Below, in pieces: positions 82 through 17,068 of a stretch of 64,000 nt of DNA. The stretch covers positions 62,001 through 126,000 of IMG/VR virus record IMGVR_UViG_3300042387_000948; one strand, 5' to 3'. Below the pieces are notes generated by a model. That model was not told where the DNA came from and did no database searches. It was given only the letters and a program-made list of their open reading frames with translations. The position numbers and the translations under genes are program-made. Each line of letters opens with the position of its first letter. Within the stretch, counting starts at the first letter, position 1.

Positions 82-825
82 TCATATAAATTCTATTTCT
101 TTTGTTTTAAAATTGTAATCAAATGTTACTGGTTTGTTAATGTAGTTATATCCCAATGATAAGTTAGAACCATTTATACAATGTGTTTTACCAAAATGTA
201 CATAACCATAGCCTTCGTGAATGTGTCCGCATAAGTGGAAATCTGGCTCTAAATTCATTATGGTTTCTCTTAAATCCTCACATCCAACATTCATATTATT
301 GTTGGTTCTATCTACTACACCAAATAGAGGACCGTGCGTAACTATGATATTAGCATCCGGCGGAATAGTTCCCCACATCTCTCTACTATCCTCTCCCCTA
401 CTCACATTGAATGCCCAATCTCTACCAAAGCGTGCTGAATATGGTGAACCCCAAATCTTAACTCCCTCAATATCAACCGATTCATTCTCTAAATAGATAA
501 CACCATCGGGTAGATTACCAATCAATTCAGTAACCCATTCCGGCTTACCTTCAACTACTGGTAAATCCCAATCGTTTGTACCATCAAAGTATTGTGCTTT
601 CTTACGATATAGTATTTCGGATTCAAATGAAAGGTCGTGATTTCCAACAATGAACACTTTGTATTTGTATGGTAGATTACCAAACCATTTTACAAATCGT
701 TCGCATTCACTCTTCCTACCCAACGAAGATATATCTCCGCTGTGTATAATGATATCCCCACCCGGCAAATCTGCGGTAAGCTGGTTGTGTTTGTTGTGGG
801 TATCTGAAATGTGTGTTATTCTCAT
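82..825 (-). CDS. Metallophosphoesterase (calcineurin-like, MPPED-type)
   Basis: Motifs SDTH, HSGD, GNHD, THGP, GHIHE; start likely at MRITHISDTH. Confidence 0.9.
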   Translation of the reverse strand: MRITHISDTHNKHNQLTADLPGGDIIIHSGDISSLGRKSECERFVKWFGNLPYKYKVFIVGNHDLSFESEILYRKKAQYFDGTNDWDLPVVEGKPEWVTELIGNLPDGVIYLENESVDIEGVKIWGSPYSARFGRDWAFNVSRGEDSREMWGTIPPDANIIVTHGPLFGVVDRTNNNMNVGCEDLRETIMNLEPDFHLCGHIHEGYGYVHFGKTHCINGSNLSLGYNYINKPVTFDYNFKTKEIEFI

Positions 826-1035: not shown

Positions 1036-1278
1036 TTAGTCAAAGTATAAGGTTGCTATATCATTTTCATCAACAGATGCATATCCTAAATGATTTTCGT
1101 TGTTTATAAACGAATCTGGGTCATTGGGGATGCTAGCATCTCTAACTTCACCATCAACAGATACATACTTAATATTTTCATATTGTATAACCTGTAATGT
1201 TTCTGGATTTTGTAAACCATGTACAACTGGTTCACCTTCTAATCCTAAATTTACTAATTTAAATAATTGCTTTTCCAT
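1036..1278 (-). CDS. Hypothetical protein
   Basis: ORF in tightly packed minus-strand run. Confidence 0.7.
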   Translation of the reverse strand: MEKQLFKLVNLGLEGEPVVHGLQNPETLQVIQYENIKYVSVDGEVRDASIPNDPDSFINNENHLGYASVDENDIATLYFD

Positions 1279-7648: not shown

Positions 7649-8194
7649 TTATATTCTAACTACCCAACTCCCATCTTTAAATGTAGCGTCTACTTTATCA
7701 TCAAAAATTTTACCCAAGTTATGTCTAATATTTCCCCAACCATAATCATGCCCACATACAAACCCACCTGGCTTAATTATACTTTTATAATGCGTAATAT
7801 CATAGTAAACACCATCAACGGTATGCAATCCATCAATGTAAACCATATCCCATTGTTGTTGGTTTAGGATTGGGAACGCATTTTCTGATGTATCTCTTAT
7901 TGATTTTATGTTTGATAGGGGTAATGTATTCTTTATAAATTCAGCATATACTTTATCAAATGGTGCATATCCGTTTGAAATAAAATCAAAATCAACATCA
8001 TAATTAACAAAAGGGTCTACCGATACCACTTCTTTAAAGTTTTGGGCAAACATTAAAGTACTTTCACCAACATAACTACCAATTTCAATCATCCTCATTT
8101 CAGATGTTGGTGTTACATTATTTACCCAATCAATCATTTGTTGCAAACCCTCTCTATGTTCAGGAAATCGCATTTGATAAAAATTATCTTTCAT
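7649..8194 (-). CDS. Class I SAM-dependent methyltransferase (Methyltransf_24-like)
   Basis: IEIGSYVGES, YIDGLH, GGFVCGHDY. Confidence 0.85.
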   Translation of the reverse strand: MKDNFYQMRFPEHREGLQQMIDWVNNVTPTSEMRMIEIGSYVGESTLMFAQNFKEVVSVDPFVNYDVDFDFISNGYAPFDKVYAEFIKNTLPLSNIKSIRDTSENAFPILNQQQWDMVYIDGLHTVDGVYYDITHYKSIIKPGGFVCGHDYGWGNIRHNLGKIFDDKVDATFKDGSWVVRI

Positions 8195-8203
8195 AATTAT
8201 TTT

Positions 8204-8659
8204 TTATAGTTTAACTAAGTAATCAGCTGCATAAGTTGCAATTGGACCTAATGTTTTGTATCTAACTTCATAACCCATACCTTCAACCATACCAACCGCC
8301 TGTCTGAACACTTCGTTTGATTTGTATCTTGGGTCTGGGTTCAAGTCCACATCAATCCATCTTGCTTTTGGAATACCAGCAGCTTGTAATGTTTCCGCAG
8401 TTTCAATGGCATACCATACTTCATTTAATAATCTAACTGAACGAGCTGGTTCTCTTCCAACTTTCCATCTACGATATAATACGTGAGCACCTTTACCTCT
8501 ATTATACAGGGCAACCACAACAGCGTATATCGTTTTATCCGAAAAGTTTTGCGAATCGCATCCAATTAAGATATCTACATCGTGGTGTGTTTCTAAGTAT
8601 TCGGCGATGTAGCTCTCTAAGTGAACTTCTTCTCCACAATACAATTTCCTGTAATCCAT
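8204..8659 (-). CDS. RNase H-like YkuK/DUF458 family protein
   Basis: IGCDSQ, RLLNEV, IDVDLN, ATYAAD motifs. Confidence 0.8.
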   Translation of the reverse strand: MDYRKLYCGEEVHLESYIAEYLETHHDVDILIGCDSQNFSDKTIYAVVVALYNRGKGAHVLYRRWKVGREPARSVRLLNEVWYAIETAETLQAAGIPKARWIDVDLNPDPRYKSNEVFRQAVGMVEGMGYEVRYKTLGPIATYAADYLVKL

Positions 8660-8703
8660 AGTTTTATTGTTTAAGTAATCATTTGTTATAACGTTTTAGT
8701 TTA

Positions 8704-8795
8704 TGGTAGAGAGTACCGGATTCGAACCGGTGGACAGGTTTAACCCCATCGGCAGTTTAGCAAACTACTGGTATCAGCCACTCACCCAACTCTCT
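8704..8795 (-). tRNA. tRNA-Ser(GCT)
   Basis: Cloverleaf, long variable arm, encoded CCA. Confidence 0.9.
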
Positions 8796-8804
8796 ATAAA
8801 TATA

Positions 8805-8978
8805 TGGCTGTAGTGGGAGGATTCGAACCATCCACAATGCGATTCAGTTAGTAACATCCGCCGGCCGGCTTGGTGGTCTACCCCATATTACTAACCTATT
8901 TCGTACTCATCACCCCCGAGACAGGAGGGCTTGTCTGCCAAATTAACACACGTGCTAATCATTTTCCAACACACTACA
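8805..8978 (-). ncRNA. Giant tRNA-Asp(GTC)-like RNA with D-loop and variable-arm insertions
   Basis: 7-bp acceptor TGTAGTG/CACTACA plus GCCA, TTCGAAT T-loop, CCCTC-CTGTCTC-GGGGG anticodon arm, ~80 nt structured variable insert. Confidence 0.7.
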
Positions 8979-8985
8979 ATTTTAA

Positions 8986-9074
8986 TGGAAGAGGGAGTAG
9001 GATTCGAACCCACGGACCTGTTACAGTCTCTTGATTTCAAGTCAAGTGCGATAGACCAACTCTGCCATCCCTCC
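8986..9074 (-). tRNA. tRNA-Ser(TGA)
   Basis: Cloverleaf, long variable arm, CCA. Confidence 0.9.
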
Positions 9075-9079
9075 TTATT

Positions 9080-9646
9080 TTACTCTTTTTCTGCTTTTCT
9101 TTCTTCTACTACTTCTAAATATGCCTGATACAAAGAATCCTTATGCTCCATTAATTCATCAATTACACCCTGTCTATAATCTTCAGCTTCTTCATCATCT
9201 TCACTCCAATATTTATCCAAATCCAATTTAATATCCAAATCTTCCATATCATCGTAACCAAATCCAAATACAAATGCTCCCATAGGGTCTAAACATTCAT
9301 CTTCGTATGTACCATATAGAACTACATCTTTATTAATACCACATAATATATATGTCAACTTTTCTAAAAATTGAGTTGGTACACTCCAAGCTGATGTCAT
9401 GTAGATTTGGACTTCGGATTCAAAGTCTTCAGTAACGGCTGATTCTACTTCCAACCACTTTGCACCAATGTTATCATACCACCAATCTAACTTGCTGAAA
9501 TCCACATCTCCATACATTTGTTTGATGATGTGTTCAACATTGGTATAGTACTCATTAGTACCATCGTTAAAGATTTCTTTTAATTTGTCATACGATGGTT
9601 GGTCCAAATTCCCAATCGTAAGTGAGGTACTCATATGATTTGCCAT
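9080..9646 (-). CDS. Hypothetical protein (YubB/DUF1281 ferredoxin-like-domain type) inside tRNA array
   Basis: WWYDNIGAKW and TSAWSVP motifs. Confidence 0.65.
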   Translation of the reverse strand: MANHMSTSLTIGNLDQPSYDKLKEIFNDGTNEYYTNVEHIIKQMYGDVDFSKLDWWYDNIGAKWLEVESAVTEDFESEVQIYMTSAWSVPTQFLEKLTYILCGINKDVVLYGTYEDECLDPMGAFVFGFGYDDMEDLDIKLDLDKYWSEDDEEAEDYRQGVIDELMEHKDSLYQAYLEVVEERKAEKE

Positions 9647-9661
9647 AACTTATATTTTGTT

Positions 9662-9745
9662 TGGTGGGAGTAGAAGGACTCGAACCTCCGAACTCGTAGA
9701 GAAGTGATTTACAGTCACCCGCAATTGCCACTATGCGATACTCCC
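9662..9745 (-). tRNA. tRNA-Tyr(GTA)
   Basis: Cloverleaf, variable arm, CCA. Confidence 0.92.
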
Positions 9746-9749
9746 AAAT

Positions 9750-9857
9750 GTGTGGGTAGGAGTCTCATCCCACACTAGACTTAAGGTTTCGAGTTCTTTT
9801 ACAACTTACTCTGAAAGTTATTCGCCCGCGTGTCCTTCACCTTAAAGCGGGAGCTCC
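9750..9857 (-). ncRNA. Putative structured RNA (nested hairpin)
   Basis: GGAG/CTCC, TTAAGGT/ACCTTAA and ATAACTT/AAGTTGT nested stems. Confidence 0.45.
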
Positions 9858-9860
9858 TTA

Positions 9861-9935
9861 TGGAGCAGGTAGTCAGATTCGAACTGACGTCTCCGGTTTG
9901 GAAGACCAGAGCACTAACCACTGTGCTATACCTGC
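9861..9935 (-). tRNA. tRNA-Gly(TCC)
   Basis: Cloverleaf, U73, CCA. Confidence 0.92.
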
Positions 9936-9940
9936 AAATT

Positions 9941-10153
9941 TCCCCACATTGAGATTCCATGTGAGTAGTTATTTATAGTTTTTCCTTTCAAAAACCCAAT
10001 GCATCTTACTGCTTAAAAAGTCAACACTACTGGGAGGAGATGTGTCGTTCTCCTTTATTCCCACGACACCGGCGTTTAAGGATGTCCGGTCCAATACCCT
10101 ATCCATTGTTAAATGAGTCTTGGATTAAAGACTACCGAGCATCTCTTACTCGT
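9941..10153 (-). ncRNA. Putative ~210 nt multi-stem RNA with pseudoknot
   Basis: GAGTA/TACTC closure, AGTCTT/AAGACT, TGTCGT/ACGACA whose loop GGGA..GGAGA pairs with TCTCCTCCC. Confidence 0.55.
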
Positions 10154-10155
10154 TG

Positions 10156-10229
10156 TGGACCAGGTAGGAATCGAACCTACTACCTTTTGATTATGAGTCA
10201 ACTGCTCTAACCGAGTGAGCTACAAGTCC
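10156..10229 (-). tRNA. tRNA-CAT (Ile2 lysidine-type or elongator Met)
   Basis: Cloverleaf, CTCATAA loop. Confidence 0.85.
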
Positions 10230-10281
10230 ATATCGTTTAATCTAACGATAAAATCTGATATCGTTTCTTTCAACGATAATA

Positions 10282-10393
10282 TGGGTACCGGAGGAGAGAT
10301 TGGTTACTCTCACGCAGTCCTTTTCGGTTACTGCACCACTTCGAATCAGGCACGTCTAATGGTTGTACTTCCCATTCTTTCCGCCACTCCGGC
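10282..10393 (-). ncRNA. Aberrant tRNA-Leu-like RNA
   Basis: Acceptor GCCGGAG/CTCCGGT, hairpin in D-loop, long variable arm, non-canonical T-loop TAACCAAT, weak anticodon stem. Confidence 0.6.
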
Positions 10394-10403
10394 ATATAAT
10401 TTT

Positions 10404-10479
10404 TGGTGGAGGATAACGGATTCGAACCGTTGTCTCCGCCGTGCAAGGGCGGTGCTAAAACCAGCTCAGCTAATCCCCC
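10404..10479 (-). tRNA. tRNA-Ala(TGC)
   Basis: Cloverleaf, G3:U70, CCA. Confidence 0.93.
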
Positions 10480-10481
10480 AA

Positions 10482-10650
10482 ACCGAAACCGCTATTTTCA
10501 TAACGGCTTCTTTTCTCCTTCTCCACTTACCTCTTTCGAGTGGAAGGCAAGATTGTAATGTAACGGCTGTGCGGTTTGTGTCCGAGATTGCTCTCCAGTT
10601 TCCATTTCATTCTTAGCGTCCGTTCCGCCATTCTTTCGAATCGTTACATT
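10482..10650 (-). ncRNA. Putative structured RNA rich in GNRA-capped hairpins
   Basis: AATGTAACG/CGTTACATT closure; ATTC-GAAA-GAAT, GAGA-GCAA-TCTC, CTC-GAAA-GAG, GCCGTTAT-GAAA-ATAGCGGT. Confidence 0.6.
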
Positions 10651-10651
10651 G

Positions 10652-10734
10652 TACTTCGGACTGGAATCGAACCAGCACTCCATAAAGAAACAGCATTTTA
10701 AGTGCTGCGGGTCTACCGATTCCCCCACCGAAGC
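10652..10734 (-). tRNA. tRNA-Leu(TAA)
   Basis: Cloverleaf with variable arm. Confidence 0.9.
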
Positions 10735-10743
10735 GAACTGAAC

Positions 10744-11097
10744 CTACACTTTTGTAAGTTTGGCTTTCTTAAACTTTGTGTGTTTCTGCTTACCACTAAT
10801 AAGAATATCCACACGTTTTGTGAACCTAGCATTCATTACATCTCTTACTACATAAACTCCATTGTGTTTACCGATGCCTGTAATTCGTACTTTAGTTCCA
10901 AATTTGTACTTTCTCTTCAAATCTCTACTAACTGCCACAATTCGGGTTGTTCCTTTCTTAATTCGAAACCCACTTGCCGTTAATCGAGGTGTACTATCTG
11001 TCTGCGATGTTGTTGCAGAATAAGTTGTCACTGTTACTATATCCGTTGCGTTTACTCCGAAACTCAAAAGGATACATACTATGGTCTTTTTTATCAT
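10744..11097 (-). CDS. 3D (Asp-Asp-Asp) domain protein, secreted
   Basis: Signal peptide; TYS..QTD..TASG, VAVSRD, FGTKV, VRD, RVDI. Confidence 0.8.
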   Translation of the reverse strand: MIKKTIVCILLSFGVNATDIVTVTTYSATTSQTDSTPRLTASGFRIKKGTTRIVAVSRDLKRKYKFGTKVRITGIGKHNGVYVVRDVMNARFTKRVDILISGKQKHTKFKKAKLTKV

Positions 11098-11111
11098 ATA
11101 GTTTTATTTAG

Positions 11112-11185
11112 TGACTCCGTTTGGGTTCGAACCAAAGACCTATTCTTTAGAAGAGAATTGCTCTATCCAGCTGAGCTACGGAGCC
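11112..11185 (-). tRNA. tRNA-Arg(TCT)
   Basis: Cloverleaf. Confidence 0.92.
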
Positions 11186-11220
11186 GTTATTTATTCCTAC
11201 TTATAAATCTTTTATATAAC

Positions 11221-11586
11221 TTAAATCTTCATAGAGTCATCATCTTTACTTTCGGATGGTTTCTCTAATTTCAATTCAATTGGCGGATACTTTTTGATAA
11301 TCTCTAACGAATCTTCTGCTGCCCATTTCTCTTTTAATTGAGCACGTTTTTCGATGGTTTTGATATCAGCTTTAAGTTTATCAATTCTATCATTGATTTT
11401 CTTAATCTTTACCCATCTGGTTGCGTAATCTGATGTTGTTACTGTCTCCCATTCAATATCCCTTTGAAGGACTTTGATTTCTTTCTTAATTGTTTCAATT
11501 GCTCCTCTATCGTTTGATAATTGAGGGTCTACACCACCCAACAAACTATTGAAGAACATTGTAATTGATAATACGATTTCTTTCAT
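11221..11586 (-). CDS. Hypothetical coiled-coil protein
   Basis: ORF downstream of promoter 11604-11635. Confidence 0.65.
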   Translation of the reverse strand: MKEIVLSITMFFNSLLGGVDPQLSNDRGAIETIKKEIKVLQRDIEWETVTTSDYATRWVKIKKINDRIDKLKADIKTIEKRAQLKEKWAAEDSLEIIKKYPPIELKLEKPSESKDDDSMKI

Positions 11587-11653
11587 AACTTATTTTGTTT
11601 TTACAAAGATACGCAAAAGTTTTCACATATCCTAATTTTATTTTTACTTTTTG

Positions 11654-11724
11654 ATGCCTTACTAGGATTCGAACCTAGACTAACTCCGCCAAAAGGAGTT
11701 GCGCTACCCTTACGCTATAAGGCA
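11654..11724 (-). tRNA. tRNA-Gln(TTG)
   Basis: Cloverleaf, U1-A72. Confidence 0.9.
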
Positions 11725-11729
11725 ATTCG

Positions 11730-11803
11730 CAGTTCGTACGGGATTCGAACCCGTGGTCTCTTCCGTGACAGGGAAGCATGTTGGGCCTCTACACCAACGA
11801 ACT
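11730..11803 (-). tRNA. tRNA-Asp(GTC)
   Basis: Cloverleaf, G73. Confidence 0.92.
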
Positions 11804-11809
11804 AAAATA

Positions 11810-11992
11810 AAACAAACTTTTTGTGTCCTTCTACACATCATAACCAACTTTCATTGGCGGTTACATTTCGCATTGGGTTAATTACTCCCCACTTATAGTA
11901 ACTCTCTCCTGACCTGTATGACTATTCCGGCTTCAACAGGACCCATTTGGATTTTATATACCGAGGGGTTACACCACAGTCGTTGTTTGTTT
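11810..11992 (-). ncRNA. Putative ~180 nt structured RNA
   Basis: AAACAAAC/GTTTGTTT closure, TGGGT/ACCCA, CCTGT/ACAGG, GTTACT/AGTAAT, CCAAT-GAAA-GTTGG. Confidence 0.55.
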
Positions 11993-11994
11993 TG

Positions 11995-12067
11995 AGCTTT
12001 TGATAGGACTCGAACCTACAACCTGCTGATTACAAATCAGCTGCACTACCAATTGTGCTACAAAAGC
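11995..12067 (-). tRNA. tRNA-Thr(TGT)
   Basis: Cloverleaf. Confidence 0.92.
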
Positions 12068-12071
12068 AATT

Positions 12072-12121
12072 TGTTCGTCTTTCCGAGCTGTCATCGGTTG
12101 ATTATATACAACACCACCGAA
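12072..12121 (-). ncRNA. Small RNA motif (Flavo-1-like)
   Basis: CGGTGG..hairpin..CCGATGACAGCTCGGAAAGACGAAC; resemblance recalled, not searched. Confidence 0.45.
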
Positions 12122-12125
12122 AGTG

Positions 12126-12197
12126 TACTCCCAACGGGAATCGAACCCGTGACTCATCCGTGAAAGGGACGTGACTTAACCGCTTGTCGATAGGAGC
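12126..12197 (-). tRNA. tRNA-Glu(TTC)
   Basis: Cloverleaf. Confidence 0.92.
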
Positions 12198-12202
12198 AGA
12201 TG

Positions 12203-12332
12203 TGCGGATGGGAGGATTCGAACCTCCAGTTACCTCTTCATTGTAACTAATTACAATGGCCAGCCTTTATTTTTGTTATCTCCTTACGTTATGGAGTTCC
12301 CACATTACCATATACTTTAGCTGGTCACCCGC
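12203..12332 (-). ncRNA. tRNA-like RNA with giant D-arm and no anticodon loop
   Basis: Acceptor GCGGGTG/CATCCGC, perfect T-arm GGAGG-TTCGAAT-CCTCC, CCAGC/GCTGG stem enclosing ~55 nt, CATTGTAA-TTAG-TTACAATG hairpin. Confidence 0.65.
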
Positions 12333-12353
12333 TTTTTAATAATTATCAATATT

Positions 12354-12362
12354 TCAAAGAAC
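12354..12362 (-). promoter_or_regulatory. boxA-like antitermination site (GTTCTTTGA)
   Basis: Immediately downstream of promoter 12367-12398; identical at 13875 and 15301. Confidence 0.65.
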
Positions 12363-12417
12363 ACTACAAAAATACGAAACTTTTTTCATATTTCCAAACA
12401 ATTCTTACTATTTAATT

Positions 12418-12492
12418 TGGGGTGTAAGGGCGGTATCGAACCGACTTCCCTGGCTCCACAAACCAGTACATCACCTTAATGCTTCAAACACC
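12418..12492 (-). tRNA. tRNA-His(GTG)
   Basis: Cloverleaf with G-1:C73, CCA. Confidence 0.88.
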
Positions 12493-12499
12493 ATTTTAA

Positions 12500-12778
12500 T
12501 TAGAAGCGGGATTCCGCCGCCCAATCTTCATTTACTAAATACCAATATTCTTCTCTTAAATAAATAATATCGTAACTACCATTACTATCAATCGAAACTA
12601 TATTTTTCTTAACCAACGAACCCAATGCCCCACGAAGAACTTTGGTAGAGATTCCCAATTCTGAACTCAAATCATTTACATCCACATCAGAGAAACCTGG
12701 TTCAGCATACAAACCACCAATAAAGGTAGTAAGGGTTTTGGTTTCCAATTCAGTCAAATTCAATTCGTTAATCATCAT
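12500..12778 (-). CDS. Winged helix-turn-helix protein
   Basis: DVNDLSSELGISTKVLRGALGSLVKKNIV HTH pattern; class II promoter upstream. Confidence 0.65.
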   Translation of the reverse strand: MMINELNLTELETKTLTTFIGGLYAEPGFSDVDVNDLSSELGISTKVLRGALGSLVKKNIVSIDSNGSYDIIYLREEYWYLVNEDWAAESRF

Positions 12779-12899
12779 ATCTTTAGGTGGAGGGAGGGGA
12801 GTTTGTCTCTCAACCACGTATTAAAGGTACGCAATTTTAATGAAATAAACAAGCCTTTTGTAAAATATTTTTAAATTATTTTTAAATTATTTTTAAAGT

Positions 12900-12967
12900 T
12901 GCGTGTACGAGGTTCGAACTCATTTGGCTTTCCTTATGAGAGATAGCTCTTTTCCACTAAGCCACGC
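12900..12967 (-). pseudogene. Degenerate tRNA-CAT-like sequence
   Basis: CTCATAA loop and TTCGAAC T-loop but only ~5-bp acceptor and weak stems. Confidence 0.5.
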
Positions 12968-12973
12968 AATGAT

Positions 12974-13048
12974 TGGTGTGATTGAAGGGAATCGAACCCT
13001 TATTGAATGCACCACAAACATTTGTCCTACCATTAGACGACAATCACC
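12974..13048 (-). tRNA. tRNA-His(GTG), second copy (A73)
   Basis: Cloverleaf, CCA. Confidence 0.82.
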
Positions 13049-13049
13049 G

Positions 13050-13120
13050 AGGCGAGTACAGGATTCGAACCTGTGTAAGAGCTTTTGCAGAGCTCCATAT
13101 AACCACTCTAACAACTCGCC
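13050..13120 (-). tRNA. tRNA-Cys(GCA)
   Basis: Cloverleaf, U73. Confidence 0.88.
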
Positions 13121-13125
13121 TTATG

Positions 13126-13197
13126 TAGTTCCGGAGAGAATCGAACTCCCATCAATTGGTTCGTAGCCAATCATTTTATCCGTTAAACTACGGAACT
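13126..13197 (-). tRNA. tRNA-Arg(ACG)
   Basis: Cloverleaf. Confidence 0.9.
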
Positions 13198-13203
13198 ATT
13201 TTG

Positions 13204-13274
13204 CACACCCACTAGGATTCGAACCCAGAACAACGCTTTTGGAGAGCGGCATGATACCATTTCACTATGGATGC
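13204..13274 (-). tRNA. tRNA-Trp(CCA)
   Basis: Cloverleaf. Confidence 0.85.
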
Positions 13275-13295
13275 GGATAATACTAAATCGTATTG

Positions 13296-13373
13296 TTGGC
13301 AAGAGGGGATTCGAACCCATATTTTCAACCAATTACCTTACTCCAACTTATCAGATTGGGTGGATACTTGCCA
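13296..13373 (-). ncRNA. D-armless tRNA-Ile(GAT)-like RNA
   Basis: Acceptor TGGCAAG/CTTGCCA, CCAAT-CTGATAA-GTTGG anticodon arm, TTCGAAT T-loop, 7-nt connector instead of D-arm, 22-nt variable region. Confidence 0.7.
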
Positions 13374-13382
13374 ATGTTAATG

Positions 13383-13460
13383 TGGTAGGGTAAGAGGGAT
13401 TTGAACCCCCATGATGTCTACAACCCAAATGTAGCGGCTTACCAGTTAGCCCATTACCCT
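13383..13460 (-). tRNA. tRNA-Pro(TGG)
   Basis: Cloverleaf, CCA. Confidence 0.87.
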
Positions 13461-13466
13461 ATATTG

Positions 13467-13540
13467 TTCCCCCGGCGTGATTCGAACACGCGACCCCCTA
13501 TTTAAAAGATAGGTGCATCTACCAGCTGAGCTACGAGAGA
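13467..13540 (-). tRNA. tRNA-Lys(TTT)
   Basis: Cloverleaf. Confidence 0.87.
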
Positions 13541-13589
13541 ATTTGTTTGTCATACTTGTCACTTTCCATAGTATAAATTGTTTAATTGT

Positions 13590-13666
13590 TGGTGGAGCAG
13601 ACAGGTATCGAACCTGTTCCTCTGGATTTTCAGTCCAGCGCAATGAACCTCATCTGCCACTACTCC
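13590..13666 (-). tRNA. tRNA-Phe(GAA)
   Basis: Cloverleaf, CCA. Confidence 0.9.
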
Positions 13667-13704
13667 CTATTCCGATTTTGATATGTAGCATCGGGAACTA
13701 CCTG

Positions 13705-13778
13705 TGTCCATAGTAGGACTCGAACCTACACAAACTGGTTTCTAAGACCAGTGCGGTTGCCAATTACGCCATACGGAC
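13705..13778 (-). tRNA. tRNA-Leu(TAG), short variable loop
   Basis: Cloverleaf, CTTAGAA loop, 5-nt variable loop. Confidence 0.85.
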
Positions 13779-13786
13779 ATTTAATG

Positions 13787-13859
13787 TAGTGAGTGAGGGA
13801 CTCGAACCCCCAACATCCGCCATGTAAAGACGGCGCTCTACCAATTGAGCTAACCCACT
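13787..13859 (-). tRNA. tRNA-Val(TAC)
   Basis: Cloverleaf. Confidence 0.92.
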
Positions 13860-13874
13860 ATTTTTACCACGATG

Positions 13875-13883
13875 TCAAAGAAC
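13875..13883 (-). promoter_or_regulatory. boxA-like antitermination site (GTTCTTTGA)
   Basis: Follows the first tRNA downstream of the attenuator. Confidence 0.65.
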
Positions 13884-13889
13884 TCTATT

Positions 13890-13962
13890 GAGGGGAGGGA
13901 GAATTACGATATCTCGACCTGATGATTAACAGTCATCTGCTCTGCCTCTGAGCTACCACCCC
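13890..13962 (-). tRNA. tRNA-Asn(GTT), atypical T-loop ATCGTAA
   Basis: Cloverleaf. Confidence 0.85.
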
Positions 13963-13969
13963 TTAAAAC

Positions 13970-14007
13970 AAAAAAACCCCTAACCGATTTTGATTTCAGT
14001 TAGGGGT
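13970..14007 (-). terminator. Intrinsic terminator of candidate attenuator
   Basis: ACCCCTAACTGA-loop-TCGGTTAGGGGT followed by T-run, ending 7 nt before tRNA-Asn. Confidence 0.85.
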
Positions 14008-14032
14008 CTTTTAACCTTTATATGTAGTTTGG

Positions 14033-14167
14033 TTATTCCACTTCTACATTTTGTACCCCTAACGTTATTTCAATTCTCTTCGAATTAAAATCACACACAC
14101 CAATCCCAGCCCACAACATATTCGTTGCCGGTTGATAATTGGGTGTATGTAGGTTAAGAGTTTTCAT
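14033..14167 (-). CDS. Candidate attenuator leader peptide (44 aa, all 20 amino acids)
   Basis: MKTLNLHTPNYQPATNMLWAGIGVCDFNSKRIEITLGVQNVEVE; overlaps antiterminator arm 14055-14063. Confidence 0.75.
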   Translation of the reverse strand: MKTLNLHTPNYQPATNMLWAGIGVCDFNSKRIEITLGVQNVEVE

Positions 14168-14180
14168 TCTATTTCTTTTA

Positions 14181-14189
14181 TATAAGTAT
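14181..14189 (-). promoter_or_regulatory. Putative phage late-type promoter motif ATAYTTATA
   Basis: Same motif upstream of genes at 16189, 25201, 34447, 35596, 36110, 42087, 43911, 46400, 63058. Confidence 0.6.
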
Positions 14190-14299
14190 GTATTATTTAA
14201 TTTTTCAGTTTTTCCACATCTTTTAGTGTTATGGGAGACCGAAATCTCCCACTCCACAGTGTAATAAAAATCAAGATATGAAAACAACTCACGTTGTAG

Positions 14300-14370
14300 A
14301 GCGGTGGGATGGAATTGAACCATCTCCTTCGACCTGGACGGCCGATGTGCTACCGTAACACTTCCTCCGC
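14300..14370 (-). tRNA. Aberrant tRNA-Gly(TCC)-like (G33)
   Basis: GCG acceptor plus U73, loop CGTCCAG, A:A mismatch at 5:68. Confidence 0.7.
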
Positions 14371-14375
14371 TTGTG

Positions 14376-14445
14376 AGCGGAACTAAGGAATCGAACCCCA
14401 ACTTCTCTACGGATGTAGAGCGTGCTACCTTTACACTAATACCGC
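14376..14445 (-). tRNA. Aberrant tRNA-Gly(TCC)-like (6-nt loop)
   Basis: GCG acceptor plus U73, loop CATCCG, U:U mismatch at 5:68. Confidence 0.65.
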
Positions 14446-14449
14446 TTTT

Positions 14450-15290
14450 AGTGGTTACGGATGAGAATACTCACGTAAGCGAACCAGCTTTTGAAACCTT
14501 ATGTTTTAGTTTCGTTTCCACTACCTTTTGAGTAGTACCGATTCAATGCGGGTTAGTAATGCCAACCACTCATAAAGTTACAAACTACTCTCTCCCTAAT
14601 CCGTTTCTTCTACTCTGCCGAGCAAACTCACACTTGCGGTGTTAGAAATTTTTCAAAAGAATCACATTCATCTTGCGGATGTTTGTGGCAAGGAACAACT
14701 CCCTACTATGTACGCACCTTTCGTTCGTAACTGATGGACACTTTTGCTCTTTTTGTTTAAGTTTGCACTACCAGCAAATTGAGTTTTGGTTGTAGATTTA
14801 TTCAAGTAGTGGTCCACCCATCAGCTTCCCCACCTTTTGAACGAAGAAATACTGAACTACTCGATGTGTTATCCCTAACACCATATTTCAAGTCATCTTC
14901 ATAACTCCTACCTTGGTAGGTGAAGAGTAAGGATAATAACAGCACCACCTGTACTTTATCTTACCTTTCGGTTTTAAGATTACTCTAATATTGAATCACG
15001 CAATGATAAGGAGAGATTAAGTCCTTACTTCTTACAATAACTCTATGGATTATTCTTATTGGTATCCCTACCTCAACCGAACTATCTACATTAGCCCAGT
15101 CATCTCACCACCCTCTTTACAGTGTTACCCTCAATACTAAAGGTGAAATGATATTCCACTTGCTTACTCGAGCTCCTTACGAAGCCGCAAACCACTTAAC
15201 CAAATGATTCACTTTATCCTACTTTCGTAGTTTATTTCACGACCATAAGCGGCCGATTGAATACTATGTGAAACAAGTTCACTATGTACT
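14450..15290 (-). ncRNA. Large ornate ncRNA, probable GOLLD RNA
   Basis: ~840 nt without a long ORF, many GNRA hairpins and AGTA/GAA loop-E-like motifs, own promoter and boxA, adjacent to tRNAs; size and context fit GOLLD. Confidence 0.65.
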
Positions 15291-15300
15291 CTAATATCTT

Positions 15301-15309
15301 TCAAAGAAC
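15301..15309 (-). promoter_or_regulatory. boxA-like antitermination site (GTTCTTTGA)
   Basis: Between promoter 15328-15359 and the large ncRNA. Confidence 0.65.
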
Positions 15310-15319
15310 TTTTTCTTTA

Positions 15320-15517
15320 TTGTTTATCAAAGATACGAAACTTTTTTCGTATTTCCTAATAATTTCTTAATTATTTTTTCAAATTAGTAAATGGTATCCG
15401 GCTTTATAGTTTACCACTTATGGTTGGACTTCACACATTCGGTTTTATTAGATGTTGGCTTCAACCATTTCCTAATTTGTTTATCAAAGATACGAAACTT
15501 TTTTCGTATTTCCTAAT
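15320..15517. repeat. Duplicated ~40 bp promoter unit (15320-15360; 15477-15517)
   Basis: TTGTTTATCAAAGATACGAAACTTTTTTCGTATTTCCTAAT direct repeat with internal inverted repeat. Confidence 0.8.
15381..15478 (-). ncRNA. Putative ~98 nt small RNA with own promoter
   Basis: Terminal stem AAATTAG-G-AAATGGT/ACCATTT-A-CTAATTT starting right after promoter 15485-15516. Confidence 0.5.
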
Positions 15518-15549
15518 ATTTTGTAAATTACTTTCAAAATATTTTTTAG

Positions 15550-15621
15550 TAACGGGGGACAGAATCGAACTATCGTAAACCTGGCTTATGAGACCGGTGG
15601 GTGACCAACAACCTCCCCGCG
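15550..15621 (-). tRNA. tRNA-Met(CAT), initiator-like, shortened D-arm
   Basis: CGCGGGG 5' end with C1:U72 mismatch, CTCATAA loop. Confidence 0.75.
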
Positions 15622-15707
15622 ATGTATAAAAAAAGAAACGTTTTTCTTTATCGTTTACAAAGATACGAAATCTTTTTGATAAATCCAAACGTTTCTTAAT
15701 CTTTTTT

Positions 15708-16166
15708 TTACTTCTTTCCTATTTTGTAAGATAAACCCAGTCCTAATGTGAAATCACTACCTACTAAGTTACCAATTGTCCACAAATTAAGTGTGCTTCC
15801 TGGTCTTAATGGGTTGTACATTAAAAATGCATTCGGTTTGTTTCCACCTGCAGTTGGTTGAACACCAAATCCTACAATTGCTTTATCTTCTTTCAATTGT
15901 CTTAACACACCAAACTTCATATTGGAAGAGATTGTTCCAGTAGCAGTATTAACTCCCGGAGGAAGTACAATTCCGCTTGAGTTTTGGTCTTTAATTTCAG
16001 TATAAGGAAGTCCAGCGAAGAAACCCCATCCTTTTTTCATGTATCCACCGGTAATATAACCATCCGATGGTCCACCTTTTCTAGTTCCGGTTAAGAACCA
16101 TTCTTGTGCGTTTGAAACGATACTCATTCCGAATAACATTACAAACAATAACATTAACTTTTTCAT
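15708..16166 (-). CDS. Secreted/outer-membrane beta-barrel-like protein
   Basis: Signal peptide ending SNA-Q; C-terminal LGLGLSYKI beta-signal-like. Confidence 0.6.
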   Translation of the reverse strand: MKKLMLLFVMLFGMSIVSNAQEWFLTGTRKGGPSDGYITGGYMKKGWGFFAGLPYTEIKDQNSSGIVLPPGVNTATGTISSNMKFGVLRQLKEDKAIVGFGVQPTAGGNKPNAFLMYNPLRPGSTLNLWTIGNLVGSDFTLGLGLSYKIGKK

Positions 16167-16212: not shown

Positions 16213-16434
16213 TCATAACCCATATACTGGTTTGATAGATTCTTCTCTATTTAAAGTGATGTTTCTATCCATTCGTATATCTTTATTACTTAGAGTCCAG
16301 ATTTCTCCATCATCCATTCCGCAAGTAAAGTATAAATCGTGCTCCTGAGAGTAATCTATACACATAAATGCAAATCCTTTCATTCCGTCCTTTACCCTAA
16401 CTATGGGTATGGTTGGATTCAATTGTATTATCAT
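16213..16434 (-). CDS. Hypothetical protein
   Basis: MIIQLNPTIP...DYSQEHDL phage-type motif; start trimmed. Confidence 0.65.
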   Translation of the reverse strand: MIIQLNPTIPIVRVKDGMKGFAFMCIDYSQEHDLYFTCGMDDGEIWTLSNKDIRMDRNITLNREESIKPVYGL

Positions 16435-17068
16435 TCTTTTGTATTTTAGGGAACAATATTTGCTCCATAAAGTAACGTGCTCTTTCTTCACCTATCTTTG
16501 CTTTCAATGCTCCAAAGGTTCTAGGGTTTGATGCTTGAACTTCACAATAACGATTTTGGATATCAATAACTTTATTAATATCACTCGCCTCTTCTTTTAA
16601 ATATAACCCATCCTTCAAAAACGTTTTGTACTTTTCTAATGACCAACTGCAAAACCTCATAAACTCACTATCAGATTCAGGTTTAATCATAATAAATTTA
16701 TCCGAAAAAACAGTTGCCCATTGAGGTAGTGGTTTTCTCCCATTAAAATCTATATCCTCATCAAAGTTATACTCCTTAATGCCAGGTGATAAGTCCATAT
16801 AAACACCAGTTACACCCGATTTAGTAGTTATGACATCAAAACCATATATGGGTTCTGGTGATGTTGGATTTGGGAATGTGGTAACGTGTAGTACCTCAAT
16901 TGCCCTATCACCATATCTTTCAACGTGTGCCATTCTATACACATCAGATTCAAAACGATGATTCACCCACCCAAAATCTTCAGTAGGTAATACTTTACAA
17001 CCCGGTGCGTGTTTCATTATAGAAAGAAACCTATCGGCTAACTCATCCAAATATTCGGTGTAGTTCAT
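16397..17068 (-). CDS. pcyA: Ferredoxin-dependent bilin reductase, PcyA/PcyX family
   Basis: RMAHVE, LHVTTFP, PIYGFDV, DLSP, LPQWATVFS, QNRYC..Q..NPRT, FMEQILFP. Confidence 0.85.
   Translation of the reverse strand: MNYTEYLDELADRFLSIMKHAPGCKVLPTEDFGWVNHRFESDVYRMAHVERYGDRAIEVLHVTTFPNPTSPEPIYGFDVITTKSGVTGVYMDLSPGIKEYNFDEDIDFNGRKPLPQWATVFSDKFIMIKPESDSEFMRFCSWSLEKYKTFLKDGLYLKEEASDINKVIDIQNRYCEVQASNPRTFGALKAKIGEERARYFMEQILFPKIQKNDNTIESNHTHS

Follow-up and report, generated by a model that had tools for sequence, protein, structure and literature searches.

An all-amino-acid leader ORF within a predicted transcription attenuator upstream of a phage tRNA array

The phage DNA analyzed here, a 64,000-nucleotide stretch of the IMG/VR record IMGVR_UViG_3300042387_000948 (hereafter the window), carries on its minus strand a block of about 20 tRNA genes that runs from tRNA-Asn(GTT) down to position 8704. 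Between tRNA-Asn and the next tRNA gene upstream lie a 44-codon ORF, a repeated 9-nt arm and an intrinsic terminator (Table 1), exactly as a first-pass annotation of the sequence had described them. The arm GTTAGGGGT occurs only twice on the minus strand of the whole window, once near the end of the ORF (arm A) and once as the 3′ arm of the terminator (arm C), while the complementary ACCCCTAAC (arm B) occurs once. The terminator is the best terminator-like site between 8000 and 16500 (17 pairs), and its T-run ends only 7 nt before tRNA-Asn. The first-pass annotation had, however, taken tRNA-Asn to be the first tRNA of the array; it is the first after the terminator, but not of the locus, since tRNA-Gly(tcc), an aberrant tRNA-like gene and a full-length GOLLD RNA (RF02032; 284.6 bits against a gathering threshold of 150, E 3.7e-81, model positions 1-416 of 416) lie upstream on the same strand. 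The same order, with a full-length GOLLD RNA, was seen in the related loci L002, L003 and L005 (relatives are designated by L numbers).

Table 1. Positions of the leader, its RNA arms and neighboring features in the window.
Feature	Position	Strand	Details
Promoter-like repeats upstream of GOLLD	15311..15707	-	Three copies of a 67-nt repeat carrying a TTTG ... TAnnTTTG motif; motif starts at 15665, 15492 and 15335
Upstream RNA genes	14299..14864	-	GOLLD RNA (14458-14864), aberrant tRNA-like gene (14375-14445), tRNA-Gly(tcc) (14299-14370)
Conserved 24-mer and UUCG-capped hairpin	14233..14283	-	24-mer 14283-14260; hairpin 14250-14233
A/U-rich stretch	14168..14215	-	Probable ribosome loading region; contains ATACTTATA (14189-14181)
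Leader ORF	14033..14167	-	44 codons; ATG at 14167, TAA at 14035-14033
Arm Z	14153..14161	-	ACTCTTAAC, codons 3-5; pairs with arm A
Two hairpins inside the ORF	14067..14149	-	About 14149-14092 and 14091-14067; enclosed by Z:A
Arm A	14055..14063	-	GTTAGGGGT, codons 35-38; pairs with Z or with B
Inner helper hairpin of the antiterminator	14022..14049	-	ATGTAG (14049-14044) / CTACAT (14027-14022); leader stop codon in its loop
Arm B	13999..14007	-	ACCCCTAAC; shared by antiterminator (A:B) and terminator (B:C)
Intrinsic terminator	13970..14012	-	Extended stem 14012-13971; arm C (GTTAGGGGT) 13984-13976; run of seven T 13976-13970
tRNA-Asn(GTT)	13890..13962	-	First gene after the terminator
Promoter-like repeat inside the array	12350..12416	-	Motif at 12374; a further copy at 11587-11653

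To ask whether this arrangement is conserved, we collected related sequences using a DNA motif about 90 nt upstream and a peptide-profile search, which together yielded 59 unique leader-terminator DNAs and 152 unique peptides of 30-54 residues. A terminator was found in 57 of 58 relatives, the 58th being cut at the locus end, and tRNA-Asn follows it in every relative with enough sequence, at the head of an array of 15-25 tRNAs with roughly one per amino acid. The 24-mer between tRNA-Gly and the leader is unique in the window and was found exactly in 69 metagenome loci, and the adjacent hairpin shows compensatory changes. In contrast, searches of cultured phages found no relative: blastn and megablast of the region matched only tRNAs, and tblastn of the peptide found nothing. 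An exact three-arm DNA pattern found only the window's own contig among viral contigs, and a scan of GTDB gave only a 1.6-kb contig binned with a Cyanobium MAG, which is too weak to name a host. It should be noted that all examples form one homologous family, so the properties described below are a conserved trait of one lineage rather than repeated independent invention.

The duplicated arm is kept in these relatives and covaries with the terminator. A contiguous A:B helix of 8 bp or more is present in 58 of 59 unique relatives, with only the L002 type having one mismatch (A-C). Since a full-length MAFFT alignment misplaced arm A of a subfamily with 30-codon ORFs, sequences were re-aligned from arm A onward; over 54 distinct sequences, the A:B helix is paired in 99.3% of cells, with compensatory changes in 3 of 8 pairs, a level reached in 0/500 shuffles. 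The B:C helix of the terminator is 100% paired, also with 3 compensatory pairs. The exchanges include GGGG/CCCC to GAGG/CCTC, to GGGT/ACCC and, in L091, to GTCAGGG/CCCTGAC. We considered the possibility that this is a plain constitutive terminator separating the GOLLD/tRNA-Gly transcript from the array, the rest being chance or a remnant of duplication. The terminator is indeed strong, and promoter-like repeats exist further down the array. However, no promoter-like repeat lies between the terminator and the next 11 tRNAs, the T-run and tRNA-Asn are only 7 nt apart, and arms A and Z (see below) covary with the terminator over 59 unique sequences, making this explanation very improbable.

Interestingly, folding revealed a fourth arm that the first-pass annotation had missed. 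Arm Z pairs with arm A and would act as an anti-antiterminator, equivalent to segment 1 of the trp attenuator, giving a full 1:2 / 2:3 / 3:4 layout. The Z:A helix encloses two hairpins to form a predicted three-way junction, and an equivalent two-hairpin junction is predicted in L002, L003, L010 and L011. The whole spacer folds at -106.9 kcal/mol (z = -8.7 against shuffles). RNAalifold on a cross-family MAFFT alignment of the 5′ part gave no structure, because the Z arm is shifted by 1 nt between subfamilies and the inner region is full of indels; we therefore used anchored counting and per-sequence folding. By anchored counting, core positions of Z:A are paired in 53-57 of 57, with G-C to A-U and U-A to C-G exchanges, and L091 shows a four-way compensatory change in Z, A, B and C. 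Staged folding of the 59 relatives gave Z:A in 59/59 before B is made, A:B in 47/59 once B is made, and Z:A plus B:C in 50/59 at full length. In 9 of 59 relatives, however, the full-length MFE keeps A:B.

Translation of the ORF is inferred. Its ATG is invariant in 59/59 relatives and the frame stays open at 30-54 codons in 152 variants despite indels, while the other two frames hold up to 8 stops (1 or more in all but one case). The region upstream of the ATG is unpaired in the predicted fold and is A-rich without a Shine-Dalgarno sequence, resembling the phage's own genes, of which only 2 of 51 have one. These data argue against a structured non-coding RNA switch (riboswitch, T-box-like tRNA sensor or protein-binding leader) in which the reading frame is incidental. 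Terminator/antiterminator switches without ORFs are common and the spacer is very strongly structured, but an Rfam scan of 8000-16000 at E up to 1 found only GOLLD, tRNAs and chance hits, with no T-box or other match in 13963-14298, and the amino acid property described below is defined only in this reading frame. We consider this alternative unlikely.

It is also conceivable that the ORF encodes a functional micro-protein with its own terminator, the arm duplications tuning mRNA stability or translation and the amino acid content being a side effect. In support of this, gene callers predict it as a hypothetical protein in many metagenomes, and the N-terminal motif (Met1, His7, Pro13, Trp19) is invariant. 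Conserved residues such as His7-Thr8 and Trp19 also lie in RNA stems, so that peptide conservation and RNA conservation cannot be separated, a caveat on the explanation favored below. However, no Pfam or PHROG family matches, the C-terminal half is not alignable between subfamilies, and arm A is conserved and covaries even in the 30-codon subfamily, where it lies outside the ORF. The gene sits inside a non-coding RNA operon, and no known constraint on protein function demands one copy of every amino acid. A micro-protein is thus a rather remote possibility.

In the leader of the window, all 20 amino acids are present by codon 33, the first 15 codons are all distinct, 31 of the first 36 are distinct, and four Leu and three Thr codons are used. 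Only 2 of 730 ATG-ORFs in the window have all 20 amino acids in their first 33 codons, as do 0.07% of 33-residue windows of this phage's proteins, and no 36-codon window of the phage's genes has 31 or more distinct codons. Composition-matched, stop-free shuffles of the ORF give p = 0.017. The family makes the case much stronger than one sequence could: 127 of 152 unique peptides contain all 20 amino acids and 21 contain 19, where random draws with the family's own composition give a mean of 5 and a flat composition a mean of 21. The full set is reached as early as residue 28-30, which only 0.03% of 30-residue windows of the phage's proteins achieve. His occurs exactly once in 144 peptides, Tyr in 140 and Cys in 119. 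Single-copy residues (Cys, Tyr, Asp, Gln and others) change position but are rarely lost; the sole Cys sits at 11 different positions, and Asp, Arg and Glu likewise move. The first-pass annotation had proposed a pan-codon element, but synonymous diversity is only marginally, and not clearly, above expectation (median P 0.18). The signal is therefore pan-amino-acid rather than pan-codon.

The position of these residues is also compatible with a role for stalled ribosomes. In 57 of 59 leaders every amino acid type first appears upstream of arm A, and in 44 of 59 all types are clear of a stalled ribosome's leading edge. In the window, the first Glu (codon 33) lies so close to A that a ribosome stalled there would cover part of it; 13 of 59 leaders have one such blind type. 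The stop codon lies -11 to +29 nt from the end of arm A. Leader content does not mirror array content: we tested whether amino acids missing from a leader match tRNAs missing from its array, and they do not (L025, L016). The L025 array, for example, lacks Val, Tyr, Phe, Lys, Pro, Cys and Asp tRNAs, yet its leader has those residues.

The first-pass annotation had called the ATACTTATA motif promoter-like. It is present and conserved in close relatives, but related words are not enriched in the window (46 found against 51 expected) and its assignment as a promoter is unsupported. A sigma-70 promoter scan was uninformative (13 hits against 24 expected). The recognizable promoter-like repeats lie upstream of GOLLD and inside the array, at 12374 and 11611, with no such motif between GOLLD and the leader. 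The upstream copies are the likely transcription starts feeding the leader, while the internal copies fit the earlier remark that internal promoters exist further down; the attenuator would therefore solely control the tRNAs from 13962 to about 12418.

In the absence of expression, ribosome-profiling or termination data, the explanation we favor, with moderate confidence, is a ribosome-mediated transcription attenuator placed in front of the phage's near-complete set of tRNA genes. In this inferred scheme, RNA polymerase, probably coming from the promoters upstream of GOLLD, transcribes the leader. With no ribosome on the leader, Z pairs with A, leaving B free to pair with C, and transcription stops before tRNA-Asn. 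A ribosome that translates smoothly passes over A and stops just before to 29 nt beyond it, blocking A:B or letting Z:A re-form behind it, so that termination again follows. A ribosome that stalls anywhere between Z and A, because the aminoacyl-tRNA for that codon is missing, would keep Z and the internal hairpins apart and leave A free to pair with B, allowing read-through into the tRNA genes. Because each amino acid appears upstream of A, loss of any single tRNA species or amino acid would induce the phage's own tRNA set, in a homeostatic or counter-defense loop.

An alternative is that the same switch, driven by leader translation, senses overall translation capacity (ribosome availability, or the coupling between ribosome and polymerase), the varied codons serving to make translation time independent of any single tRNA. 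Consistent with this, each amino acid occurs only about once, giving low sensitivity to partial depletion of any one, synonymous codon diversity is not clearly selected, and leader content does not track array content. A leader meant to be insensitive should nevertheless avoid rare residues, whereas Trp, Cys, His, Tyr and Met are retained almost without exception and lost copies are replaced elsewhere. Together with a completeness rate far above even the flat-composition null and the location of the amino acid types upstream of arm A, this leads us to regard the alternative as unlikely.

The layout resembles that of the leader-peptide attenuators of amino acid biosynthesis operons (trp, his, leu, thr, ilv, phe; the Yanofsky model), where a short translated leader typically precedes mutually exclusive 1:2, 2:3 and 3:4 helices, the last being an intrinsic terminator directly before the regulated genes, the leader stop codon lies close to segment 2, and ribosome position decides which helix forms. 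Here, however, there is no run of codons for one amino acid; every amino acid is present, mostly once. As classical attenuators need codon runs for sensitivity, only severe depletion would be sensed. The regulated genes would be tRNAs rather than biosynthetic enzymes, the element is phage-encoded and embedded in a non-coding RNA operon, and segments 1 (codons 3-5) and 2 enclose a three-way junction that holds most of the ORF. T-box riboswitches (RF00230) also couple a terminator/antiterminator decision to tRNA charging, but they bind one specific uncharged tRNA directly, through a specifier loop and the T-box sequence, and have no ORF, whereas this element has a conserved ORF and would read all tRNAs through the ribosome. 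In the leader ORFs of antibiotic-resistance genes (ermC, cat, vmlR, msrD/mef; for example PMC9226507, PMC4335068), a stalled ribosome likewise remodels downstream RNA to switch on the gene, in response to translation trouble in general rather than to one amino acid. Those leaders respond to drug-bound ribosomes at specific peptide motifs, nothing in them requires all 20 amino acids, and their outputs are proteins. Lastly, GOLLD next to a phage tRNA island is a known arrangement, and phage tRNAs are proposed or shown to replace host tRNAs that are depleted or cleaved by defense nucleases (10.1101/2024.12.08.627333; PMC10264068; PMC11464382), but we found no report of a regulatory leader controlling transcription of such an array.

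It remains possible, although we would not put it at better than even, that the virus carries a universal aminoacyl-tRNA sensor, in which a leader peptide holding one copy of every amino acid reads the charged-tRNA pool through the ribosome. When any one species is missing, through starvation, phage-induced decay of host tRNA or host anticodon nucleases (a link that is inference only), it would release transcription of a complete replacement tRNA set. We have not found such feedback control of tRNA supply by attenuation described for any tRNA genes. The element would also provide a compact natural part (about 200 nt) that reports any translation-elongation defect, and the presence of all 20 amino acids is a simple criterion to search for similar sensors elsewhere.

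Why large phages carry near-complete tRNA sets, and when they use them, has been debated for decades, with codon compensation, replacement of degraded host tRNAs and escape from tRNA-cleaving defense systems among the proposed reasons (PMC10264068, PMC11464382). A leader that samples all 20 amino acids and gates the array would mean that the phage itself measures tRNA sufficiency and responds to it. It would extend the classic attenuation paradigm from one amino acid and its own pathway to any amino acid and the tRNA pool, and would be a first example of tRNA genes controlled by a leader peptide.

The 336-nt spacer between tRNA-Gly(tcc) and tRNA-Asn holds exactly what the first-pass annotation had described: a 44-codon ORF on the minus strand, in which all 20 amino acids are present by codon 33 and in which 15 of the first 15 and 31 of the first 36 codons are distinct. 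The word GTTAGGGGT occurs once within the ORF (arm A) and once downstream (arm C), these being the only two copies on that strand of the whole window, while its complement ACCCCTAAC (arm B) occurs once. An inner stem, ATGTAG/CTACAT, surrounds the stop codon, and the strongest terminator-like site of the region follows, with its run of seven T ending 7 nt before tRNA-Asn. The context needs one correction, since tRNA-Asn had been taken for the first tRNA of the array. An Rfam scan finds a full-length GOLLD RNA (RF02032, 284.6 bits) upstream, followed by an aberrant tRNA-like gene and tRNA-Gly, so that tRNA-Asn is the first tRNA after the element but not the first tRNA of the locus. No Rfam family matches the spacer itself. 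The aberrant tRNA-like gene, which follows GOLLD directly, is conserved in relatives; it has an Rfam tRNA score of 35 bits, and ARAGORN reports a two-base 'tc' anticodon, or a four-base 'ttag' in two loci (L030 and L044).

Coordinates of the leader, its RNA arms and neighboring features, with selected features of related loci (L numbers)
Feature	Position	Strand	Remark
Ferredoxin-dependent bilin reductase gene	16397-17068	-	Pfam PF05996, E 1.6e-18
67-nt repeats upstream of GOLLD	15311-15707	-	three in tandem; motifs at 15665, 15492, 15335 (157 and 173 nt apart)
GOLLD RNA	14458-14864	-	probably extending to about 15330
Aberrant tRNA-like gene	14375-14445	-	
tRNA-Gly(tcc)	14299-14370	-	
Spacer	13963-14298	-	
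24-nt motif and UUCG-capped hairpin	14233-14283	-	
Leader ORF	14033-14167	-	ATG at 14167, TAA at 14035-14033
Arm Z, ACUCUUAAC	14161-14153	-	codons 3-5
Arm A, GTTAGGGGT	14063-14055	-	
Arm B, ACCCCTAAC	14007-13999	-	
Arm C, GTTAGGGGT	13984-13976	-	
tRNA-Asn	13890-13962	-	
tRNA-His(GTG), two genes	12974-13047 and 12418-12491	-	separated by a 480-nt gap
67-nt repeat inside the array	12350-12416	-	motif at 12374
67-nt repeat inside the array	11587-11653	-	motif at 11611
Aberrant tRNA-like gene, L002	12965-13035		
Aberrant tRNA-like gene, L003	15054-15125		
Aberrant tRNA-like gene, L020	5268-5339		
tmRNA, L084	1087-1442		
tmRNA, L086	583-993		
tmRNA, L091	988-1350		
tmRNA, L092	949-1311		
Hit in Cyanobium MAG, L094 (CAYNGR010000338.1)	1108-1200		
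Promoter-like motif, leader and terminator of Cellulophaga phage phi40:1, L095 (KC821612.1)	549-700		

Taken alone, the single-sequence observation is unusual but not decisive. Only 2 of 730 ATG-ORFs in the window reach all 20 amino acids within 33 codons, as do 0.07% of 33-residue windows of the phage's proteins, and composition-matched, stop-free shuffles of the ORF give p = 0.017. Since such an ORF could be met by luck in a scan of 64 kb, the test had to be comparative. The neighboring bilin-reductase-like gene, an auxiliary metabolic gene usually discussed for cyanophages and conserved next to the GOLLD-tRNA locus in the relatives, led to the window's own contig (a 207-kb viral contig) and to three related phages with the same order: GOLLD, odd tRNA(s), spacer, tRNA-Asn and array. 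We then used as a probe a conserved 24-nt motif about 90 nt upstream of the ORF, because it is blind to the properties of the ORF. It found 7 viral loci (including the window's own contig) and 69 metagenome loci, mostly from freshwater samples, and is almost perfectly conserved in these 76 loci. Every one of the 58 unique downstream sequences has an ATG-ORF at the same place, and a terminator directly before tRNA-Asn was found in 57 of the 58, the remaining locus being cut short at its end. The 24-nt motif is unique in the window and is followed by a UUCG-capped hairpin with compensatory changes; its start can pair with a stretch 3′ of the hairpin, and it might be a processing site, a protein site or a 5′ stabiliser. 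A peptide-pattern scan added subfamilies that lack the 24-mer. Four relatives that lack it (L084, L086, L091 and L092) carry a phage-encoded tmRNA about 1.5-2.5 kb upstream of the leader; these phages therefore combine tmRNA, a tRNA array and the all-amino-acid leader. A profile search of 5.8 billion proteins gave 169 hits, all unnamed and without a Pfam domain.

The all-amino-acid property is a family trait. Of 152 unique leader peptides (30-54 residues), 127 contain all 20 amino acids, 21 contain 19 and 4 contain 17-18. Some reach the full set by residue 28-30 (for example the peptides P0069, P0119 and P0024), the chance of which in this phage's proteome is 0.03% per 30-residue window. Random peptides drawn with the family's own pooled composition give a mean of 5 complete peptides out of 152 (maximum 11 in 500 trials), while a perfectly flat composition gives a mean of 21 (maximum 35). 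The property is therefore coverage of every type, and not merely an even composition. Rare residues are typically present exactly once (His in 144 peptides, Tyr in 140, Cys in 119 and Trp in 111), and the sole copy moves between positions: Cys is found at 11 different positions, Tyr at 9, and Asp, Arg and Glu at 10 or more each. In the long subfamily, peptides that lack Cys at both positions 10 and 20 have it at 17, 29 or 35 in seven of eight cases. It should be noted that all members form one homologous family, connected through intermediates down to about 35% identity; this is strong conservation with turnover inside one lineage rather than independent invention.

The first-pass annotation had proposed that the leader is diverse at the level of codons. 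However, synonymous codon diversity, given the peptide, is only marginally above what the phage's codon usage predicts (median P 0.18; 11 of 52 below 0.05), and the accurate description is therefore pan-amino-acid, not pan-codon. The leaders also use somewhat rare codons. G-ending codons in four-codon boxes make up 20-44% of such codons in most leaders, compared to 9.5% in the phage's genes, which may reflect RNA-structure constraints; all four-box tRNAs of the array have U at the wobble position.

The ORF looks translated. The ATG is invariant in 59 of 59 unique DNA sequences, and the frame stays open across length changes from 30 to 54 codons, including 3-, 6- and 27-nt indels, whereas the other two frames carry up to 8 stops, with 1 or more in all but one case. 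The phage's 51 long genes almost never have a Shine-Dalgarno sequence (2 of 51) and have A-rich upstream regions; the region upstream of the leader looks the same and is unpaired in the predicted fold. Conserved peptide positions nevertheless coincide with RNA stems, and coding and structural constraints cannot be separated.

The spacer is far more structured than shuffled controls (-106.9 kcal/mol, z = -8.7). Folding revealed a fourth arm that the first-pass annotation had not noticed, Z, which pairs with A and closes a three-way junction containing most of the ORF. The layout is the classical four-segment one, Z:A corresponding to 1:2, A:B to 2:3 (the antiterminator) and B:C to 3:4 (the terminator). 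On an alignment of 59 sequences (54 distinct), A:B is 99.3% paired, three of eight pairs have compensatory changes (36 cells), and 0 of 500 shuffles score as high. B:C is 100% paired, also with three compensatory pairs; the antiterminator is thus as well supported as the terminator. The arms change together: GGGG/CCCC/GGGG becomes GAGG/CCUC/GAGG, or GGGU/ACCC/GGGU, and in the relative L091 all four arms carry the matching change (Z CUUGAC, A GUCAGGG, B CCCUGAC, C GUCGGGG). Only the type represented by the relative L002 has a mismatch in A:B. Staged folding of all 59 sequences gave Z:A in 59 of 59 when only the segment from the ATG to A exists, A:B in 47 of 59 once B is added, and Z:A plus the terminator in 50 of 59 at full length; in the other nine, relatives with weaker terminators, the full-length MFE keeps A:B. 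Interestingly, in the 30-codon subfamily the ORF stops at nt 90 and arm A starts at nt 92, arm A being therefore conserved and covarying even outside the coding sequence.

The geometry fits a stalling sensor. In 57 of 59 leaders every amino-acid type is first seen upstream of arm A, and in 44 of 59 all types lie far enough upstream that a ribosome stalled on them would not reach A. In 13 a single type is borderline; in the window this type is Glu at codon 33. The part of the ORF from A to the stop adds no new types. The stop lies between 11 nt before and 29 nt after the end of A, and B starts 27-47 nt after the stop. The content of the leader does not, however, mirror that of the array, as seen in the related loci L025 and L016.

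The 67-nt repeat carries TTTG ... TAnnTTTG, which appears to be the promoter form of Bacteroidota. It occurs three times upstream of GOLLD and twice inside the array, but not between GOLLD and the leader. About 470 nt of non-coding sequence between GOLLD and the nearest repeat could be the variable 5′ half of this RNA. As no repeat lies between GOLLD and the leader, the leader is probably read as part of a GOLLD-tRNA transcript, and the proposed attenuator would alone control the eleven tRNAs from 13962 down to about 12418, which fits the remark of the first-pass annotation about internal promoters. Of the two tRNA-His(GTG) genes, the downstream copy scores poorly (33 bits) and sits just before an internal promoter-like repeat; the window's array has no tRNA-Ile, which the relatives do have. 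The ATACTTATA motif, described earlier as promoter-like, is conserved in close relatives, but nothing shows that it is a promoter. The lack of Shine-Dalgarno sequences and the promoter form point to Bacteroidota, without resolving the host; the only hit among GTDB species genomes is a 1.6-kb contig binned into an uncultured Cyanobium MAG, which is probably a phage fragment and gives weak or no evidence about the host.

By its inferred mechanism, the element would work like trp/his-type attenuators, and it fulfils their structural criteria with the exception of the defining codon run, which is replaced by one copy of each amino acid. Its output would be tRNAs. It has no T-box match in the Rfam scan. 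We found no description of such an element in full-text literature searches for leader peptides, attenuators or stalling sensors linked to phage or tRNA arrays. A cultured Cellulophaga phage (phi40:1) has a similarly built but shorter leader before its tRNA array: a TAtaTTTG promoter-like motif is followed by a 25-codon ORF starting MKT, with only 12 amino-acid types, and then by a terminator. The word GGGGAGG inside this ORF, a copy of the terminator's 3′ arm, can pair with the terminator's 5′ arm.

In the absence of experimental data, the most likely mechanism can be inferred by analogy with the Yanofsky model. With no ribosome on the leader, Z:A would form first, B would pair with C, and transcription would terminate. 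With a ribosome running to the stop, A would be covered, or recaptured by Z behind the ribosome, the inner helper hairpin would be melted, and transcription would again terminate. A ribosome stalled between Z and A for want of any aminoacyl-tRNA would leave A free to pair with B, giving read-through into tRNA-Asn and the array. One codon per amino acid implies sensitivity mainly to severe loss of a tRNA species. Although this link is speculation, such a sensitivity would suit tRNA-cleaving defence systems or phage-induced decay of host tRNA (PMC10264068, PMC11464382).
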